NCBI GenBank assembly: GCA_001179505.1
Contig: CDMY01000179.1
Location: 62,001-126,000 of the forward strand
DNA from: Vitrella brassicaformis CCMP3155
Taxonomy: Eukaryota > Protista > Chromerida
Length of the DNA: 64,000 nucleotides
Direction: 5' to 3'
A program made the translations under genes and the position numbers. How positions within the stretch are numbered: the stretch's first letter is position 1; every line of letters starts with the position of its first letter. Below are positions 7,226-40,248 of this stretch, in pieces. The notes under the pieces were generated by a model, which did no database searches, was not told the origin of the DNA, and saw only the letters and a list, made by a program, of their open reading frames with translations.

Positions 7226-8826
7226 TCAACCCAACTCAAATACCGGACCACCACACGTACCCACACACACCACAGTGTGTTCGAATCTTCTGTCTGTATG
7301 GGTGTCACGTCACCTGTTTGTGTGTTTGTCTTGGCAGAGTGTTTGCAGTACCGTCTGTGGCTGCTGGATGCCCGAATCGACTGATGGCTGTGTGTGGTAG
7401 AGAGAGATCGTATACCGCCCACTCTGTGGAGAGACCAGCTGCTGATGTCACCCAATGGCTGTGGGTGGGGGACCTGCCTGCGCAGCGTTGCGCAGGCAGG
7501 TCCCCTCTCTCCCTCCCTCTCTGTTGATATGCGCCTGTCTGGGTGGCTGGCTGCCTGGCTGTGGGGGTGGGGCTGGTGTGTTGCCTTCCACTGCTGGCCG
7601 GTTTTGACCTGGTGGTTCGGCCGGTGTGTGTGTGTGTGTGAGTGTGTGGGTGTGTGAGGCCTGTTCGCCTGACTAGCTGCCTGGGTGAGCCACATGGAGT
7701 GAGACCTTCTTACATGGTATTAGTGGCACACATGCCCCTCTCCAGGTTTCTCCCACCACCCGATGGCTAGATGGATGCCTGGATAAATGGTCTGCCTCTT
7801 CCTCTCCTCGTGATACGTAATGCTCTCACTCGTTTCCTTACACCTCTCTGCCGGTCTGTCTGCCTGTCTGGCTCGCTCGTCCCTTTCTGGCTGTCTGTCC
7901 ACTCCGCCCCTCCCTCCCCTCCGATTGCCCCCACTCATGTGCATTGGCCGACCAGACCGGTGAGGTGTGTGGGTCGGAGAGAGAGGACGGAGGACAGACA
8001 GCACCAGAGGGAGATGGGCGGACAGAAGGCAAGGCAAGGCACACACACGGTGGCCTGATTGAAGTGTGAGGGCTGTAGCTGCCGATGCCCTCGGCGAGCC
8101 CAAACACAGACAGACAGACAGGCCGATCTAAATTTGTGTTTCCATCCATTTATCCATCCATCCATCCATCCATCTGCGACGCATTGTTCGCTCCATGCCC
8201 ACACACATCACAAATACGTACGTGGCCACACATGGCAGTGTGTGTCTCTCTCGCACTCGCGGTCCATCCACTCACACCGTCACACCTAACAGACGTGCAG
8301 GCTGCTCGGATGCATGCGGTGCCAATGCGGTGTCTCCCCCCCTCCTCCGTGCTGGTTGGTTGGTTGGTTAGTGTGTTTGGTTGGTTAGTGTGTTTAACGA
8401 GACTCGTGTCTGTAACCCCGGAGGGATCCTGTTGTCTCACGCACTAAACTAGCAGCATGTACATGCAAAGCATGCATACGGCCTGTCTACCCCTCCCTGC
8501 ACTGGCACCGGCGGACAAACAGATGGCAGCAGAGAGCACTGGCTGCCTTGTAGAACGTTGACAAACACCGATTCCGGCTACATACACAAGAACGGGCGCT
8601 GTCGCCCAGCAAGAGCCATGGCAAGCGTACAGAAGCCAGAAGGGGGAAGTGGAAAAATGAACGCCCTCTGAGCCACCAAAGCAATACACCACCATATACA
8701 CACATGCTCCCCTCGATCCTTTCCCCGTCTGCGAGCTCAAATCCGTCGCGAAACGTAACCCACCCTAAACAGCACACCTTTCTCTGGCGAGCGGCGTGAT
8801 TCGCCGCGTGTGCCTCGCGTAGTAGA

Positions 8827-11726
8827 ATGGCAGTGAGATACCGCTTTGCGCACGCTCAAGCGGACCACATCGGCCGCATTCCGTTTGAGGGTGCTCACAT
8901 CTTCGTTCACGAGCTCAAGTACGCCATAGCCGAGAAGGAGAAGATTCCCGTGCACGAGATAGAGCTGAGGGATGGAGAGGGCGGCAAGGAGCTGACGGGT
9001 GGCGACAAGGTGCCCAACAACTCCACCGTGGTCATCAAGAGGGTGCCTTCGAGGAAGAGGGAGACACTCCACGTCAAGGCCGAGAAGTTTCTGGTGAGAG
9101 GGGAGGCGGGAGAGAAGCCAGGGAGCGAGACACACGTCAGGCAGGGGGCATTCCAGTCAGCGACAGAACAAAGCACAGACTGGTGTGGTGTGCGTGACGT
9201 CATTCGTGTCTCGTGCAGGTTGAGGATGTGCCTGAGAAGGAGGAGGCAGTGGAGCCTCAGGAGGAGGAGAAGCGACCCCTCCCGGCCGAGTACCTCTGCC
9301 CACTCTGCCACAACCCGTACCGGGATGCCGTCCAGGTCAAGTGTGAGCAGTTCGCACAGTGTGGAGGCAAGTCCGCCTGCCGCAAATGTAAGCGTATGGC
9401 AACGACTGAATGACACGATACCGTCAGGGGAAGGAAGGACAGCAGGGTGACCTGATGGTGGCTGTGTCGTGTGCCGTTGTCGCTCAGGTGTTGACGAGTA
9501 CGTCAAGAAGCATCGCAGCTGCCCCTTCTGCAGCTCAGGATTCCGCGGCGCCATCCCCAACAAGGCACTCCGCGACGCCATGAACAAACTCGACCTGAGC
9601 AAGTTCATCCTCCCCACGCCAGACAGGCTCTCGCCGCACGACCCATCCAAGGCTCGCGGCGCATCTTCTGGGCCGCAGGGCAACCACGCACTCCCCACAC
9701 AGCATTTCCCCGCCCATCAGCATGACGTGATGCGTCCATCGCCGGCCGGCAGCACGCCGCACAATGGTGTGTTCGGCCACCAGCGCGGCCCGTCGCCGTT
9801 CATCCCTCCCCCTCCGTCGCATCCCCCGCCCCCCTCCTCCCCTGCCCCCTCTCCCTATGGCGGTGTCGTCTTGGTGGCGGCCATGGACAACCTCAAGATG
9901 GCGCAGCAGATCGACCAGTGGGTCATCGACAGCTCCCAGGCCAGCACCATCCTGGACCTCTTCAAGGGCAAGGGTGGTGCCGGTCGGCTGTTTCTCGCTC
10001 TCGGCCTGTCTGTGAGCAAGGAGGGCAAGCCATCGCCCTACCTGCTGGCCGCCGGCTACGGCACTCTACGCGAGCAGTCAGACCCCTCCCGCGACAGCCA
10101 GCCGCTCATCGAGACGTGGTGCCAGAACGACGGGGACACCACTGGAGATAGCAGTGGTAGGGGGGGCAAGACGGTGGTGGTGCTGGACTGGACACTCAAG
10201 TACGAGTTTGGCGTGCAGATCCCCACCAGTGCGCCCTGTCTAGGCGTGGTGATGCACTCGCAGCTGGCGACGGCCGAGGGGTTGAAGAAGGGTGGTGGAG
10301 AGGTGCTGGCTGACGCGCGGCAGGTCGACAAGATGGCGAGCTACATGAGGAACACGGGCAAGGGGCTGGCCAGGACAGAGAAGCCCGGAGCGGGGGCGGG
10401 GGGAGGGGGAGGGCCATTGCACCCGCCACAAGCACCTGGCGCCTTCATGCATGTGAGAGAGAGGGCGGCACTGCACTGAACCACAAGATTGAAACAAACG
10501 GACATCAGATCAGCTGTCATTCATGTCGACTGTCATCCCGTTTGTGCAGAGTGGTCCTGTTGGTTCGAATGGGTATCGTCCGCCTCCCTATGGCGGCTAT
10601 CACGGTCGCTATCCCCCTCCGCCCCCGCCCCCACCACTCCCGCCACCGCCTCCCCCTCCACCAGACGCAATGCCACAGCAGCCGGCCGCCGCCTACGGCT
10701 ACTCCGGACCGCCCCCGGTGTCCGATGAGCAGCTCAAGGCACTCAAGAAGCAGTATAAGAGGTGAGAACTGAATGACGGGCGAGGGAGAAACACGGCTTC
10801 GTGCATGTATGGTGTTGCGTGTAGGTACTGGCGTGAGATGGCCCGTCGTCAGCGTGCTGAGGATTCTAGTGACAGCTCCAGCTCCAGCGGCGACAGCCAT
10901 GACGAAAAGTGAGCACCAACATGCCCACACATCATCACACCAGAGCCACTCGGCTCACCTGCATCTCTGTGTGCAGGAAGAAGTCCAAGCGTCGCAAGAA
11001 GCGCAAGAAGAGCAGCAAGAAGGGCGACGACGCCCAGCAGCAGGAGGGCGAGGCCGCTTCCCAGGACCCGAAACCCGAGACCAAGGAGACCACTCCCAAC
11101 GGCGTGGCGGTCAAGTCAGAGGAGCGCACGGACGTGGCCATCAAGCAAGAGTACGGTGCTGCTGTAGCTGACCCTGGCCGTCCTGTGTCAGGGTCCAACC
11201 CCCGCAGCCAGTACCCGAGCAATGGGGGCGGCGATGGGGGCTATGGGTATCCCCCGTCTCGGGGTGGATGGGGAGACTCTGGAGGCCATCCGGACAGGTG
11301 GGCAACAGACACGAAACAGGGAGAGGAGAGACAGACAGACAGACGGTGGATGGATGGATGGATGGGTTACCCGCAGGTGGTATGGCCACTACCCGGATCA
11401 GCGAGGTGGCGGGCCGCACTATGGGGGCCCTGACAGGCACGAGTGGTACGTGAAAGCGACCCACTTCACTCCCCACCCTTTACCTCATGTTCATGCTCTT
11501 CTCTTTGGTCGTTTCAATCAGGTCATCGTACGACAATTACGGGTATGGCGGCGGCCCTGCCCCGCCCCCATCGCACCACCATCCCCACCACGGCTATCCT
11601 CAGCACTACGGTGGCCGTGGCCATGGTCGGGGTGGGGGCGGCGGCCACTCGCGTTATCCCCATTACGGCGGCAGTCATCACGAGAGCTACCGAGCGGCGC
11701 CTTACCACACAGGTGTGTTAGTGTAG
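8827..11726 (+). CDS. RBBP6: RBBP6/Mpe1-like cleavage-polyadenylation factor: DWNN ubiquitin-like domain, RING, YTH-like domain, Pro/Tyr/Gly/His-rich tail
   Basis: MAVRYRF...HELKYAIAEKEK...VPNNSTVVIKRVP is a DWNN domain. LCPLCHNPYRDAVQVKC...ACRKC|VDEYVKKHRSCPFC is a RING. GT-AG introns join these exons in frame. Confidence 0.85.
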
Positions 11727-12959
11727 GCTAGACAGGACGTCGTGTGCGTGTCTGTGGATGTGGATGAGTGATAGTAGCGTAGCAGTGCATGTGGTGTGAT
11801 GTGTGATGTGCTATTATGGTGTCGCGGGACCGCTGTCTCGCAAGTGACGCCTGGTCTGGAGGACATCCATGTGTTAGTAGTGAGTGTGGTGCGCATTTCG
11901 TGACTGTGCGAAAGACTGTCATTCCTCTGCGCGGCGACTGAATCGAAAAGAAGGAAACGAACAAGTGCCCAGCCAGCCCACAAGACTGGATGGACGGGAC
12001 GTTGCACTGCACGCTCTATGCTGTCTGGACCTCTCTGTAGACGGATGTCTGTGTGGTCACCCTCTCCCCCTGCCGTGATGGATGGGCCAATTTGAGCATT
12101 CATCATGTGCACAGTCATATATCCTTTTTGCGCACATCCGATCCGCACCATGCCATGCGAGAGACAGACAGACAGGGACACAATCAGTACAGTGGGCTGG
12201 TTGGCATTTGATATATGGGAAGGCAGGCAGGCAGGCAGGCAGGCATGATCAGAGAGGAACACGCCATCGGCGATTTTCTACTGACGTCTCGCGGATGGAT
12301 GGATGGATGGCAAAGAACTCTGAGACATTCATTGATCTGTGGACATTTTGACGTTCTGATGTGATGTGCGCTTCGTTGGTGCTGCCTGACTCTCGTCACG
12401 TCCGAACTCGCGAGCACTCGCACACAGATGCTTCGCGCACCCAGGCTACGCACTCACAGACATCCATACGTAGGGTGCACAGACAGCACACACAGCACAC
12501 GGCTGACAAATTCACACCGAGGGCTGGCATGGCATGGCTGTCCTTCCTTACCTTACCCGTGATATCTATCTATCGTTTTGTGTGCTTTGCGCGTGATTGT
12601 CGCCTGCTTGCTTGCCTGGATGGATGGATGGACGTGTCGTGCCCATTTCAACCGTACATGCAGTGCATACGATGCGGACCGCATTAATTGGCCCTCATTG
12701 TGTTGTGTGTCGTCTGTGTGTGCTGTGGCTGCATGCATGCAGGCCACTACTATGCTGCCAGGTGACGGCGGCGATACCAGACCGCTGAGCAACCGACCTA
12801 GACAAGTAAGCAAAACTTTCCGATGTACCCGGCACACAAGCTCACGCCGAACGAAAGCAGCTGAGACACAAACAGACTCGGCCCATGTTTGTCTATTATC
12901 ATCGTGTCACTAGTGCATGTGTGTGTGCAGCTAGCCTAGCTGGATTGGTGTCGGTGATA

Positions 12960-14114: not shown

Positions 14115-16513
14115 TCACGCCATCCGCAGCGGTCTGAATGTCTCCCTCCCGTCCCGCCCCTTGTCGACCCACCCCACCGCCCCCCACTCGACGGCCGACA
14201 CATCCTTTCTGAAGCCGTTGTCGATCTGCCCCACCAGCCCCCACTTGGCCGCCTCGTCCAGGATGGCCCGCTGCACCACCTCACGCAACTCCATCTTGCG
14301 GCCACCCACACCGCCCACCACAAAGCACTCAAGCTGCGGCGCACGCACCACCTGGCCGCCCACATTGGTCGTCCCGCCCACCACCTCCTTATTGCCCACC
14401 ACATGCAGCGATGCGGCGGCCTCCACGAACCGCGCCATCGCGGTGTTGACGCGGCGGCCGACCTCAGTGACGTTCTGCACGGGGCGGGGGCTCTGCTCGA
14501 GCACCGATGGGTTGACGAAGGACGACGCCACGCGCCAGGCGATGGCCGACATGTCCTGGTTGGCGAAGGGCATGTAGTCGTCTTGCCAGGAGGGCTCCGG
14601 GTCGACGTGTGGGGGGAGGGGGGGAGGAGGCACCGAGGGGCGGGATGGGTCGAATGAGGGGAAGGCGGTCTTGAGCTGCTGGGCGGTGGCATTGTGGAGT
14701 GCCTCGGTTAGCGCGTCGGCCATCTCGCGCTGAGGTCGCAGGGCGGCGTTGACGGCCGACATGACGGCAGTGGGCAGCTCGTTGAGCACCGCCGCATGCT
14801 CCGTCAGCACCGGCTGGCGCTGACGGCGACTCCTCTCTGTGGCTGTGAAGATGCTGCTGATGTCGGCACCCGCCCGCAGCAGTGAATGGATGATGCGCTT
14901 GTACTTGTCAATCTCGCCGCGACACCGCTCCTTGGAGGCCTCGGGAGTGTTGGGGTCCTGCGGCCGTTGGGTGTGGTCATGGTGCCATCTGGCAGCCGTG
15001 GCGAGGGGCGTCTGGCCATTGTTGTCCCGTCTGTCGATCTGGTCAGCGGGCAGCTTGCGGCAGAGGTAGTCGGCCACCTTGAGGGAGCCCTTCCATGCCG
15101 CGATGTGCAGTGGCGTCCGCCCATCATGCACGACGGTCCCTTCCGTCATGTCGGCGCCGTTCGCTGTGATGAGGTCCAGCTAGCTGTCGATGAACCACTG
15201 CAGGTAGTGGCCGCGTGCTTTGTTAGCTGCATAGTGCACCAGGTTGTAGTCGCCGCCTTCGGTGGCGAGGGTGTGGTCTCGTTCGATGAGTTGCCGATAC
15301 ATCGACAGCAACACCTTCAGATACTCGGGGGGAGGCGGACTCAGCGGCTCGGGCAGCGCCATCACTCTGTACCCCTGCAGGCGGATGCCGGGCCGCTTCA
15401 TTAGCAGCTCGAAGGCCGTCTCGTTGCCACATTCAATCGCCATTTGGAGGGGCGGGCTCCTCCGTCGATTGGGGTGGGCTCCTCCGTCGAGGAGTGCAGT
15501 CAGGACGGCCGACTGCAGCCCGTCAGATGACCACTGTGGCAGTGCGATGGGATGGCAGGCATCACCGTCATCGGCTTCGACAGTCTGGATGGTGTAGCCC
15601 GACTTGTTGTCGATGGCGATGGCGAGGAGGGGGTAAATGCACCAGGTGGGGTCTATGTCGCGGCTGTCCCTGACCACCAGCCCAGGCATGACATCTGGGT
15701 CGGCGCCCTGCTGCCGGATGAGGTCGGTCACTTCTCGCGCACTGGTGAAGCGGCGGCCGATGATCCACCGTGACAGCTCCCTGGTGGCGTCGTTGGTGCC
15801 CTTGAGGAAGCGAGCCTCCAGCTCATCGAGTCCGATGTCGCCGTCAGCCACAGGAACAGGAACAGCGGGATCTGCCAGGCCACTGAGAGGATGACCTGCA
15901 CCCCACACAGCCACCATACAACGGACAGTAATTGTGCGCACAGGATCCTCTCTCGCGTCTGTCTGGCGTACCTTCCTCCTCATTCTCCCAGTCGTCGTCG
16001 GAGTATCCGTATCCGTCATCGATATCGTCATCTTGGTCGTCATCACCATCCTCCTCCTGCATGCCATCCTGACACACGACAAAAGAGGCGGGGGGCGGAA
16101 AATGACGTATGTGCATCCATCGCATGGACCAGTGTTGGTGTTTATGAGTGCCTCACCGATTCGTCTCCATCTGCTGCCTGCGGACCATCACCACCATCCT
16201 GCTGCTGCTGGCCGCCTGGAAAGCAACACACACCCTCACCGACTCGGCTCAAGTGTGGTGCTGGTGTGTGTGCGTCCAATGGTCTGTGTGGCAGGTCTGA
16301 TCACTCACCGCTGTCTGCGCTAATGTGATGTCGTCCCTCCGGCTGCCCACTGCCGCCATTGTTATCCTCCTCAGCCAGATCGTCTGCACACGCAATCCAA
16401 GACACACACACACACGTGTGGCGCTGATGCTGTGTGTGTGATGTGTCACATTCATTCGTGTGTGGCGTACCTGCGTCGCCATCGCCACTGTCCGCCATGG
16501 CAGCGGAGGCCAT
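14115..16513 (-). pseudogene. Ankyrin-repeat protein of a lineage-expanded family, interrupted by one in-frame TAG (15180-15182)
   Basis: Ankyrin motifs PPLQMAIECGN, NLVHYAAN, GRTPLHIAAWKGSLKVADYL and GQTPLATAA are present. ORFs 15180-16082 and 14115-15149 are in the same frame (HYLQWFIDS*LDLITANGADM). Short acidic 5' exons start at MASAAMADSG. Confidence 0.75.
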
Positions 16514-39027: not shown

Positions 39028-40248
39028 TCGAGGGCGACACACCTGCGGCCGGTGTGCGGTGTAGATGGTGCACTGATTGAGGATGGCCAGGAGGACAAGA
39101 GCAGTCGTATGCACAGACAGCTAGCGGCCTTCTCTGACGCATCCATGCAGTTTTGACACACGTCGTACGTTGGCATTGATGTGTCCATGTGTGTGTGACG
39201 AACCCTTTTTGTGTGCGCATACGAACGGTTGGATTGGTGCATGGTGGAACGGCTTTCCGTTTTGGTTTTCACGTCCACATTTGATCGGTGTGAATGACTG
39301 GACGGGATGAGACAGCCATTGACCTGATCCATGGGTGCACAGCATCAATCACGTGTGTGTATTGCCTGTCGACAATCAAGTGTCCGTCTCCCCTGACTAA
39401 ACCACACACACTCACACTCACCCACGTTGACTCACCCACCAGAGGACACCGACATGAACGCATACACAGACCAGCAGTCAATCTCTGCCTTGCTTGGGGC
39501 ACACCGACCGACCGACCGACCGACCGATGGACACAAAACCACACCAGCGCAACGATGACCTGTCTGACCATGGCCATGGCTCGCACCCAGTCAAGCCACC
39601 AAAACACTCTTACATGCAGTCGTGTCTGTCTTGCCTGAGCATGTGCCTCCGTCGTGAGACGCACGTCAATGCTCATCGTGCTGGGCGGCTGTTCGTGTGT
39701 CTGTCGCAGAGGCGTGACCTCACCCATGGCCTGGTGTCTCGAGCTAAGACGCCATGGATCAGGTGGCGATCGGCTCGTTGACACACGAAGAATGAACGAC
39801 ACGCGCAGACAGACAGACAGACAGACAGACAGAATGGATGGATGGATGGATTGAATGGAATGAGTGAGTGCCAGGAAGTTTCTGATTGTCGAAGTGACGA
39901 GGCCTCAGTCGATAAAGGTTGACACGCACACACATGATCGTGTCTGCACATGGGAGTCATCCATCCGTCATGCTGTCGGGTCTGAGTCAGTCGCTAGGAA
40001 GCTAGCTACACACTGCGGCCATCAATCAAGCTGCAGCAATGCTCCTCCGCCCTCCGTATACACATACTACCTGCAACACACACACACAAACACACACAAC
40101 ACAGAGAGAGAGAGAGAAGCGTCGGCTTGCCTCCTGTCTGTGATGATGTGTGCTGCAGTGTTGTGTCACCGGCCTCTGCCGCTGTCTATGTGTGCTGTCA
40201 GATCGTATCAGCCGCTCCCCACCTGCACACAGAACACATACAGCAGTG

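Follow-up and report, generated by a model that had tools for sequence, protein, structure and literature searches.

A transcribed RBBP6/Mpe1 gene of Vitrella brassicaformis with no zinc knuckle and with a candidate, very divergent YTH-like domain after its RING

The window analysed here, a 64,000-nucleotide stretch of the Vitrella brassicaformis CCMP3155 genome, contains a transcribed gene of nine exons whose product, protein P0001 (761 amino acids), is an RBBP6/Mpe1 orthologue in which the CCHC zinc knuckle is missing. Behind its RING, and separated from it by a Pro-rich linker, is a module that we read, with a probability of about 0.5, as a very divergent YTH-like domain fused to RBBP6. The module may bind m6A. 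RBBP6/Mpe1 is the subunit that activates the CPSF73/Ysh1 endonuclease. If the module is of the YTH type, an m6A or RNA sensor would be carried by the very subunit that licenses the endonuclease. In what follows, we describe the gene and its protein, the evidence for and against the YTH likeness, and the related systems with which the arrangement can be compared. Positions are those of the window, and the exons, with the linker that precedes the candidate domain, are these:

8827..9093, forward strand: exon 1, encoding residues 1-89 with the start codon and the ubiquitin-like DWNN domain
9219..9387, forward strand: exon 2, an acidic linker without Cys, then the first half of the RING (C116, C119, C131, C137, C143)
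9488..10452, forward strand: exon 3, the rest of the RING (C146, C157, C160), then a Pro-rich linker, the candidate YTH-like domain and a tail rich in Gly
9610..9861, forward strand: Pro/Ser/His-rich linker from the RING to the domain, approximately residues 187-270, probably disordered as read from the sequence
10550..10761, forward strand: exon 4, Pro-rich; joints 10452 to 10550 and 10761 to 10825 are in transcript contigs, and the exon matches P0001
10825..10908, forward strand: exon 5, Ser/Asp-rich; from contigs and P0001
10977..11297, forward strand: exon 6, a Lys/Arg-rich stretch, then low complexity; from contigs and P0001
11377..11445, forward strand: exon 7; from contigs and P0001
11522..11712, forward strand: exon 8, Gly/Tyr/His/Pro-rich tail; from contigs and P0001
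11775..11782, forward strand: annotated last mini-exon, Val-Ala-stop, which reproduces the end of P0001

The spliced exon model reproduces P0001, and the public annotation gives the identical protein. Intron 1 (125 bases) is spliced out of transcripts; its GT..AG joint (9093 to 9219) is present in transcript contigs of runs X1, X2 and X6. The reading of the ORF at 9469-10479 from which the original prediction was made was matched exactly, and its assumption that the candidate segment is spliced to the DWNN and RING exons is borne out by a 2343-nt contig (run X6, record 22). This contig joins 8763-9092, 9218-9387 and 9488-10452 to the later exons at GT..AG borders, which shows that transcripts connect the segment to the DWNN and RING exons and that no intron lies within it. 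Exon 3, which holds both the candidate segment (approximately residues 271-440) and the second half of the RING, is uninterrupted: record 22 runs through 9488-10452 with no joint, and record 3 of run X1 covers 9858-10387. No joint to the mini-exon at 11775..11782 was found in the transcript contigs examined, and record 23 of run X6 is unspliced across 11684-11800. The Lys/Arg-rich stretch of exon 6 may, from its sequence, be likened to a nuclear localisation signal. Among the long ORFs that adjoin the gene, the sole match was to ankyrin.

Two domains identify the gene as RBBP6/Mpe1, in agreement with the original assignment. The DWNN domain matches Pfam PF08783 (E 6e-10) at protein residues 3-74 and along the full length of the profile (1-74/74). 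Its best PDB match is RBBP6 (2c7h, E 6.5e-4), and its structure neighbours in the ESM Atlas are DWNN/Mpe1 clusters. The RING (residues 104-180) has the RBBP6 RING as its best PDB match (3ztg, E 3.7e-4), flanking motifs included; its eight Cys lie between residues 116 and 160, and its coding sequence is interrupted by an intron. An N-terminal DWNN domain, an RBBP6-type eight-Cys RING with its flanking motifs, and a long, basic C-terminal region of low complexity are thus the features that the Vitrella protein shares with RBBP6/Mpe1 proteins. It differs from them in having no CCHC knuckle and in having, after the RING, an extra domain of ~170 residues, predicted to be globular.

In RBBP6/Mpe1 proteins, the zinc knuckle normally sits between the DWNN domain and the RING. 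P0001 has no C-x2-C-x4-H-x4-C motif in all of its 761 residues, no Pfam match to zf-CCHC, and no Cys from residue 1 up to C116. Some 40 Cys-free residues lie between the DWNN domain and this first RING Cys (the earlier estimate, from DWNN to RING, was about 30). The apicomplexan, fungal, plant and animal relatives in the ESM Atlas clusters mostly retain zf-CCHC. The knuckle is missing, then, as was first proposed, but the candidate YTH-like domain does not stand in its place: the domain lies C-terminal to the RING, and not at the position of the knuckle. The domain and its key residues are as follows:

9862..10371, forward strand: candidate divergent YTH-like/PUA-fold domain, ~residues 271-440 (~170 residues), from its ESM Atlas structure neighbours
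9886..9891, forward strand: D279-N280, columns 27-28 of MAFFT alignment A2
9919..9921, forward strand: W290, candidate first aromatic-cage Trp, in an invariant YTH Trp column by MAFFT, with which the chain tests described below agree
10117..10119, forward strand: W356, candidate second aromatic-cage Trp by MAFFT and chain tests, always placed at 354-357
10189..10191, forward strand: W380, which the MAFFT register makes the third cage Trp and the register of the original prediction a structural Trp in the next strand

The aromatic cage of YTH domains consists of two Trp and a third residue that is Trp, Leu or Tyr, and the base is contacted by an Asp or Asn that lies ten residues ahead of the first cage Trp. 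The two Trp codons that had been singled out, at 9919 and 10117, are indeed there, and encode W290 and W356. Aligned by MAFFT with 21 YTH domains, the segment places W290, W356, W380 and D279 in invariant columns. N280, ten residues ahead of W290 with no gap between, falls in column 28, which is D, N or H in true YTH domains and which we take to be the column of YTHDF2 D422 and YTHDC1 N367. At the third cage position MAFFT puts W380, whereas the register of the original prediction has Gly or Arg there. After W356 comes a long loop with many Gly, Ser and Asp. Identity to the YTH domains in this alignment is 14-21%; several of the RNA-contact positions are not conserved in the segment, and the YTH stretch Lys-Pro-Val-Thr-Asn-Ser-Arg is without clear counterpart in the Vitrella domain.

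The main evidence on the fold comes from the ESM Atlas, one entry of which is P0001, identical letter for letter. The nearest structures to residues 262-448 of the Atlas model are YTH (four family sets), EVE and DCD domains, with TM scores of 0.55-0.61 over 138-154 residues; the matches run from residue 262/269 to 432/448. YTH, EVE and DCD domains are all PUA-like folds. The neighbours are:

CPSF4-YTH (listed first): TM by query 0.60, 153 residues aligned
YTHDC1: TM by query 0.61
Fungal YTH: TM by query 0.58
YTHDC2: TM by query 0.57
DCD: TM by query 0.56
Archaeal EVE: TM by query 0.55, by target 0.69

The pLDDT of the Atlas model, 0.51, is a figure for the whole protein and is not local to the domain. 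Read in the context of the protein, the top three Atlas feature matches are all PF04146 with a score of 0.79, under the 0.9 threshold, and the first of these is a cluster of small YTH proteins that is commonest in Apicomplexa. The Atlas tool counts features and structure as a single source of evidence. As an isolated fragment, the domain gave no usable ESM feature match and a low recognition value. The proposal of a YTH-like fold fares unevenly: the Atlas neighbours favor it, and our own single-sequence AlphaFold2 model of the domain was too poor to use (pLDDT 33), Foldseek on that model returning noise only and no fold match. From the Atlas model we infer a YTH-/PUA-like fold for the domain, which may have descended from YTH and might bind RNA or m6A.

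In sequence searches, the domain is an orphan. No Pfam family matched the segment at E<=10, PF04146 included, so that the match to the YTH profile that had been anticipated did not materialize. A phmmer search of PDB sequences found no YTH chain at E<=10, and when 1.84 billion representatives were searched exhaustively with phmmer, the only matches were P0001 itself and one of low complexity (P0002, a repeat protein), which we rejected as a relative, the match being compositional. A word-index protein search returned P0001 alone, both with the domain and, at E up to 10, with the DWNN-RING region. A scan of metagenomes with the domain found no relative. Neither phmmer nor the metagenome scan gave an orthologue carrying the domain, and the YTH reading thus draws nothing from conservation.

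Direct comparisons with YTH were made against a profile of 21 verified domains (Pfam YTH E ~1e-49). These came from metagenome contigs, which were scanned for a degenerate version of the YTHDF motif Lys-Pro-Val-Thr-Asn-Ser-Arg-Asp-Thr-Gln-Glu-Val, designed to omit the Pro codon that follows the motif in vertebrate YTHDF genes. None of the contigs retrieved was judged to be human; one of them (L055) looks animal-like, yet departs from the vertebrate motif; viral contigs gave 0 matches to the YTH motif. Against the profile, the segment scored a probability of 0.3% with hhalign, and -1.9 bits, inside the range of shuffled sequences, with hmmsearch --max. Three further profile tests were also at chance level: Smith-Waterman gave z -0.5, glocal alignment z values between -0.4 and 1.1, and fixed-block chaining values between -0.8 and 0.9. 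These results are not decisive, because the profile is of the YTHDF type only and is narrow (Neff 1.9).

A different kind of test did give a signal. The seven YTHDC1 fragments listed in the original prediction, when chained in order along the segment, scored 75; shuffles scored 37 +/- 9, and 75 was attained by 4 of 20,000 shuffles and by 0 of 605 control ORF segments. The same chain scores 115-140 on true YTHDF-type domains. Homologous fragments taken from YTHDF-type domains gave z 1.5-3.4, with the register unchanged. The YTHDC1 fragments had been picked post hoc, with this sequence in view, and the sole sequence statistics with a positive outcome depend on boundaries chosen in that way. The parallel with the YTH pattern exceeds chance, then, in the chain test, and does not in any test that is free of those boundaries.

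How well does this evidence distinguish a YTH-like module from other things? The segment might be an orphan, a lineage-specific globular or partly disordered region of another fold with no m6A- or RNA-reader function, whose YTH likeness originates in pattern matching by two language models, the one behind the original prediction and ESM. We consider this possible, though rather unlikely. The uniformly negative results of conventional homology tests are what it would predict, as are ESM feature scores under threshold, an isolated fragment that goes unrecognised, a segment that AlphaFold2 is unable to fold, Gly/Ser-rich stretches, and no known orthologue. Against this, an unrelated sequence would not be expected to give a compact model for which the nearest seven family sets (TM 0.55-0.61) are without exception PUA-like or unannotated. 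Fusions of DWNN and YTH are known elsewhere, moreover, and independent YTHDF-type fragments, and in part MAFFT, put W290, W356, N280 and the closing Asp-x-x-Gln-Val in the same register. Were the domain not YTH-like, the gene would be unremarkable, an orthologue of RBBP6 into which an orphan segment has been inserted.

Alternatively, the fold might be PUA-like and the domain something other than an m6A reader: an EVE-, DCD- or ASCH-like branch, or a degenerate YTH that binds unmodified RNA or protein. Mmi1 of S. pombe is a YTH protein of this kind, binding an unmodified RNA motif. The nearest structures to the segment include clusters of EVE (TM by target 0.69) and of DCD, and the third cage residue is not clearly present; the unconserved RNA contacts, the missing counterpart of Lys-Pro-Val-Thr-Asn-Ser-Arg and the extremely low identity to YTH (14-21%) point the same way. 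We nevertheless regard this as distinctly unlikely, since YTH itself accounts for the feature matches and for four of the seven top family sets by structure, two candidate cage Trp and the Asp/Asn column are in place, and where 3'-end factors are known to carry a fusion, the partner is a true YTH domain. That the segment is non-coding as read, a mis-annotated exon or retained intron, is very improbable: nothing but the lack of homologues speaks for it, and it is contradicted by a 965-base open frame in the spliced contig, in frame with both the RING exon and exon 4, and by a public annotation that yields the same protein.

If the module is YTH-like, as we favor, the protein might work as follows. 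The RBBP6/Mpe1 orthologue of Vitrella has lost its CCHC zinc knuckle and carries a probably globular module after the RING. The DWNN domain would dock on CPSF73, and the appended domain would bind pre-mRNA, possibly at m6A, in a pocket that W290 and W356 would line, N280 standing in the YTH Asp/Asn column. In this way the domain could help to bring the cleavage activator to marked transcripts or to keep it there. The loss of the knuckle from the same protein hints that one RNA-contacting element was swapped for another. Such an arrangement would parallel the CPSF30-YTH of plants, apicomplexans and Chromera, and would represent a fused form of the YTH2-RBBP6 association of Toxoplasma.

In plants and Toxoplasma, m6A-guided 3'-end formation by way of CPSF30-YTH stops read-through and chimeric transcripts. 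CPSF30-L/CPSF4-YTH proteins (plants, Toxoplasma, Chromera) carry a YTH-type module on a core cleavage/polyadenylation subunit (PMC8313237, PMC8354455), a design that the Vitrella protein, from the same broad lineage, would share if its module is of the YTH type; Chromera has CPSF4-YTH (PMC8313237). They differ in that the host is CPSF30 rather than RBBP6, and in that their YTH is recognised by Pfam and has demonstrated m6A binding, whereas the Vitrella domain has no profile match. If the YTH reading is true, the Vitrella domain would be a second m6A sensor of the 3'-end machine, alongside CPSF30-YTH.

In Toxoplasma, YTH2 (TGGT1_204070) immunoprecipitates the RBBP6 homologue TGGT1_268900 (PMC8354455; restated in PMC12905994). 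There, a YTH protein is physically associated with RBBP6 (PMC8354455), and the two are encoded by separate genes. The best feature match of the Vitrella domain, a cluster of small YTH proteins commonest in Apicomplexa, would fit a single Vitrella gene that stands for two interacting Toxoplasma genes. Given a YTH-type module, the fusion would supply a 'Rosetta-stone' argument that the pull-down reflects a direct, ancient functional pair. The stronger proposition, that the domain is a working, m6A-binding YTH and the fused counterpart of apicomplexan YTH2, we regard as tentative and, on balance, unlikely.

The architecture itself, which the original prediction did not know from other RBBP6 proteins, is already represented in databases. 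An ESM Atlas cluster of 94 DWNN/YT521-B-like proteins, commonest in Ciliophora, has Pfam YTH in 100% and DWNN in 96% of its members, and so establishes that the DWNN + YTH fusion exists, and in another alveolate lineage. Like the Vitrella protein, these proteins have a DWNN domain, and what is a candidate YTH-type domain in Vitrella has its parallel in their YTH; they are unlike it in that their YTH is a bona fide Pfam match, the comparison being by cluster annotation alone. No published description of DWNN + YTH proteins was found in the literature searched, where the cluster appears to be undescribed. If the Vitrella domain is a working m6A reader, it would imply, together with the ciliate fusions and the Toxoplasma complex, a direct coupling, in alveolates, of m6A to the activating subunit of CPSF73 cleavage. 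Even if the Vitrella domain is degenerate, the ciliate-dominated cluster makes this idea testable in model ciliates.

The N-terminus of P0001, the 761-residue product of the gene under study, is that of an RBBP6/Mpe1 protein, as the original prediction had it. Pfam matches DWNN across the whole model (E 6e-10), the two best PDB sequence matches to residues 1–200 are the human RBBP6 RING (3ztg, E 3.7e-4, flanking motifs included) and the human RBBP6 DWNN (2c7h, E 6.5e-4), and the ESM Atlas neighbours of residues 1–185 are Mpe1, RBBP6 and DWNN clusters. The RING has eight cysteines, at residues 116–160. Because no cysteine precedes residue 116, and no CCHC pattern occurs anywhere in the full protein, the zinc knuckle is truly absent; most relatives' clusters in the ESM Atlas, the apicomplexan one included, keep zf-CCHC. 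The predicted loss of the knuckle thus holds, but the candidate domain (residues ~271–440; window 9862–10371) does not stand in its place, since it follows the RING rather than occupying the knuckle site. Our preferred reading, to which we give a probability of about one half, is an RBBP6/Mpe1 orthologue in which the zinc knuckle has been lost and a PUA-fold domain, derived from YTH but very divergent, is present. Through this domain the cleavage activator would be tethered to pre-mRNA, possibly via m6A.

Searches with the candidate domain found no Pfam family at E ≤ 10, no meaningful match among PDB sequences, and no relatives in a word-index protein search or among metagenome contigs. Exhaustive phmmer against 1.84 billion representatives returned, besides P0001 itself, only one low-complexity repeat protein; with a library of this size E 0.001 needs ~40 bits and orthologues below ~28% identity would go undetected, so a true absence of relatives is not proven. 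For direct comparison, 120 metagenome YTH loci were gathered by a degenerate pattern for the conserved YTHDF motif (vertebrate form excluded), 30 uninterrupted domains were extracted, and the 21 non-redundant ones were aligned. Three of the metagenome domains were checked, and match PF04146 at E ~1e-49. One locus, L055, encodes at 1318–1812 an animal-like YTHDF-type domain with Ala replacing the vertebrate Pro after Gln-Glu-Val; the other loci resemble plant or protist sequences, and none of the contigs was judged to be human. Against the resulting profile—narrow (Neff 1.9), YTHDF-type only, and in every test compared with a single query sequence—the Vitrella segment scores at chance level: hhalign gives 0.3% probability with only seven columns aligned; hmmsearch --max, −1.9 bits, equalled or beaten by 160 of 3000 shuffles; profile Smith–Waterman, z −0.5; glocal alignment, z −0.4 to 1.1 over six parameter sets; and arbitrary fixed-block chaining, z −0.8 to 0.9. 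Because the profile test failed, PF04146 membership is not established.

The parallel to the YTH pattern, from which the original prediction started, survives in part. When its seven YTHDC1 fragments are kept in order with gaps free, the segment scores 75, against 37 ± 9 for shuffles (75 reached by 4 of 20,000), at most 68 for control ORF segments (0 of 605 reach 75), and 115–140 for true YTHDF-type domains; the test is biased towards a match, because the fragments were picked after the Vitrella sequence had been seen. A less biased chain uses, for every one of the 21 YTHDF-type domains, its own homologous fragments; it gives z 1.5–3.4 and recovers the predicted register (271, ~313, 333/336, 354 and 420). 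When MAFFT aligns the segment with the 21 domains (identity 14–21%), the columns that receive W290, W356 and W380 are invariantly Trp, that of D279 is invariantly Asp, and that of N280 has D, N or H. N280 lies ten residues upstream of W290, which is also the spacing of D422–W432 in YTHDF2 and N367–W377 in YTHDC1. The two Trps proposed for the aromatic cage, W290 and W356, are thus placed as expected, but the third cage position differs between registers: in that of MAFFT it is W380, after a 19-residue insertion, whereas in the predicted one W380 takes the place of the next strand's structural Trp and the third cage position is Gly or Arg. At the level of sequence the YTH likeness appears real, but it lies at the detection limit.

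The YTH-like reading is supported chiefly by a predicted model. P0001 is present, exactly, in the ESM Atlas (pTM 0.29; pLDDT 0.51, a value that covers the whole protein), and its model has the following neighbours.

ESM Atlas structure neighbours of P0001 residues 262–448
CPSF4-YTH cluster, TM 0.60 by query, 153 residues aligned
YTHDC1, TM 0.61
Fungal YTH, TM 0.58
YTHDC2, TM 0.57
DCD, TM 0.56
Archaeal EVE, TM 0.55 (0.69 by target)
Unannotated bacterial family, TM 0.57
Lon substrate-binding domain, below the others, TM 0.41

The last of these is also PUA-like. The three feature matches listed are all PF04146, the first being a cluster commonest in Apicomplexa, with feature scores of 0.79, below the tool's threshold of 0.9. 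By the tool's own count, feature and structure searches form one evidence source, and the output is termed a lead; the isolated candidate-domain fragment gave low recognition and no usable match. The expected resemblance to YTH/PUA-like folds is seen in the ESM Atlas model (TM 0.55–0.61); AlphaFold2, run without an alignment, gave the domain a pLDDT of 33, too low for a usable model, and its Foldseek matches were noise. An orphan domain of some other fold, a possible but secondary explanation, sits easily with these failures and with the empty searches; against it, a compact model with neighbours almost all YTH, EVE or DCD would usually be atypical of an unrelated or disordered segment. A PUA-like domain that does not read m6A has the EVE and DCD neighbours on its side and the aligned Trps against it, and we hold it to be rather improbable. 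That the candidate domain works like a YTH domain is suggested by this one predicted-structure resource and by context; m6A binding, which we infer, is itself doubtful.

The context comes from related lineages. Among the structure neighbours of residues 1–185 is a 94-member ESM Atlas cluster, 'DWNN/YT521-B-like domain-containing protein' (representative 627 aa), commonest in Ciliophora, whose members carry the Pfam domains YTH (100%) and DWNN (96%). A DWNN + YTH polypeptide thus exists in another alveolate lineage, possibly as an Mpe1–YTH fusion, and the original prediction, which knew no such architecture from other RBBP6 proteins, needs correcting on this point; in the searchable literature no paper mentions both 'DWNN' and 'YTH domain'. 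In Toxoplasma the RBBP6 homologue, TGGT1_268900, comes down in immunoprecipitates of YTH2 (PMC8354455; PMC12905994), and CPSF4-YTH, present in Toxoplasma and Chromera, binds m6A (PMC8313237; PMC6117058). Cluster, pull-down and CPSF4-YTH together raise the prior for a YTH-type module on a chromerid RBBP6, and suggest a fusion, in which one Vitrella gene may correspond to two interacting Toxoplasma genes, YTH2 and the RBBP6 homologue. A YTH-type reader fused to a 3′-end factor is already known, on CPSF4, whereas the candidate module of Vitrella is on RBBP6; what is new is the subunit, and the architecture is not unprecedented.

The window is GC-rich eukaryotic DNA (GC ~0.59), and the encoded protein is identical to the annotated 761-aa P0001 of Vitrella brassicaformis CCMP3155.

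Exons of the gene (1–8 from sequence and splice model)
8827–9093, exon 1
9219–9387, exon 2
9488–10452, exon 3
10550–10761, exon 4
10825–10908, exon 5
10977–11297, exon 6
11377–11445, exon 7
11522–11712, exon 8
from 11775, last mini-exon, as annotated for P0001

Exons 1–8 combined reproduce residues 1–759. In public assemblies, one spliced contig of 2343 nt (run X6, record 22) joins all eight at GT..AG borders; two other runs yielded contigs with the same joints. Being spliced, these contigs must derive from transcripts (the run types are not recorded as RNA). The contigs show no break in exon 3, which encodes both the RING's second half and the candidate domain, so the domain's exon is joined to those of DWNN and RING, and the unjoined exon that would have refuted the original prediction is not seen. 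That the segment is a non-coding artefact, a suspicion invited by its want of relatives, is contradicted by these contigs and by the exons' reproduction of P0001, and is highly improbable. Further along, a Lys/Arg-rich run resembling a nuclear localisation signal (window 10977–11060; residues ~565–590) precedes a long Gly/Tyr/His/Pro-rich low-complexity tail. Within 11684–11800 the spliced contig stops at 11713, where the last annotated intron has its donor, and another contig crosses the interval unspliced; the joint to the Val-Ala-stop mini-exon was not seen in the contigs examined. Retention of the intron would yield Gly-Val-Leu-Val-stop instead, and the 3′ end may be alternatively spliced.

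When ten long ORFs of the window were tested with Pfam, the only other match was an ankyrin-repeat ORF (14115–15149, minus strand; Ank, E 4e-9). Tetranucleotide runs, often adjacent, are strongly over-represented: (GACA)n has 31 matches against 0.03 expected, and (TGGA)n 25 against 0.02.

(GACA)n/(TGGA)n runs, which also occur elsewhere
8105–8172
11326–11365, intron 6 of the gene
12159–12310
39808–39853

Contigs cover 11300–11403 at 30–100 times the depth of the flanks, which means that the motif recurs genome-wide; the runs also account for the 'WMDGWMDG' peptides that keep appearing when spurious ORFs are translated.
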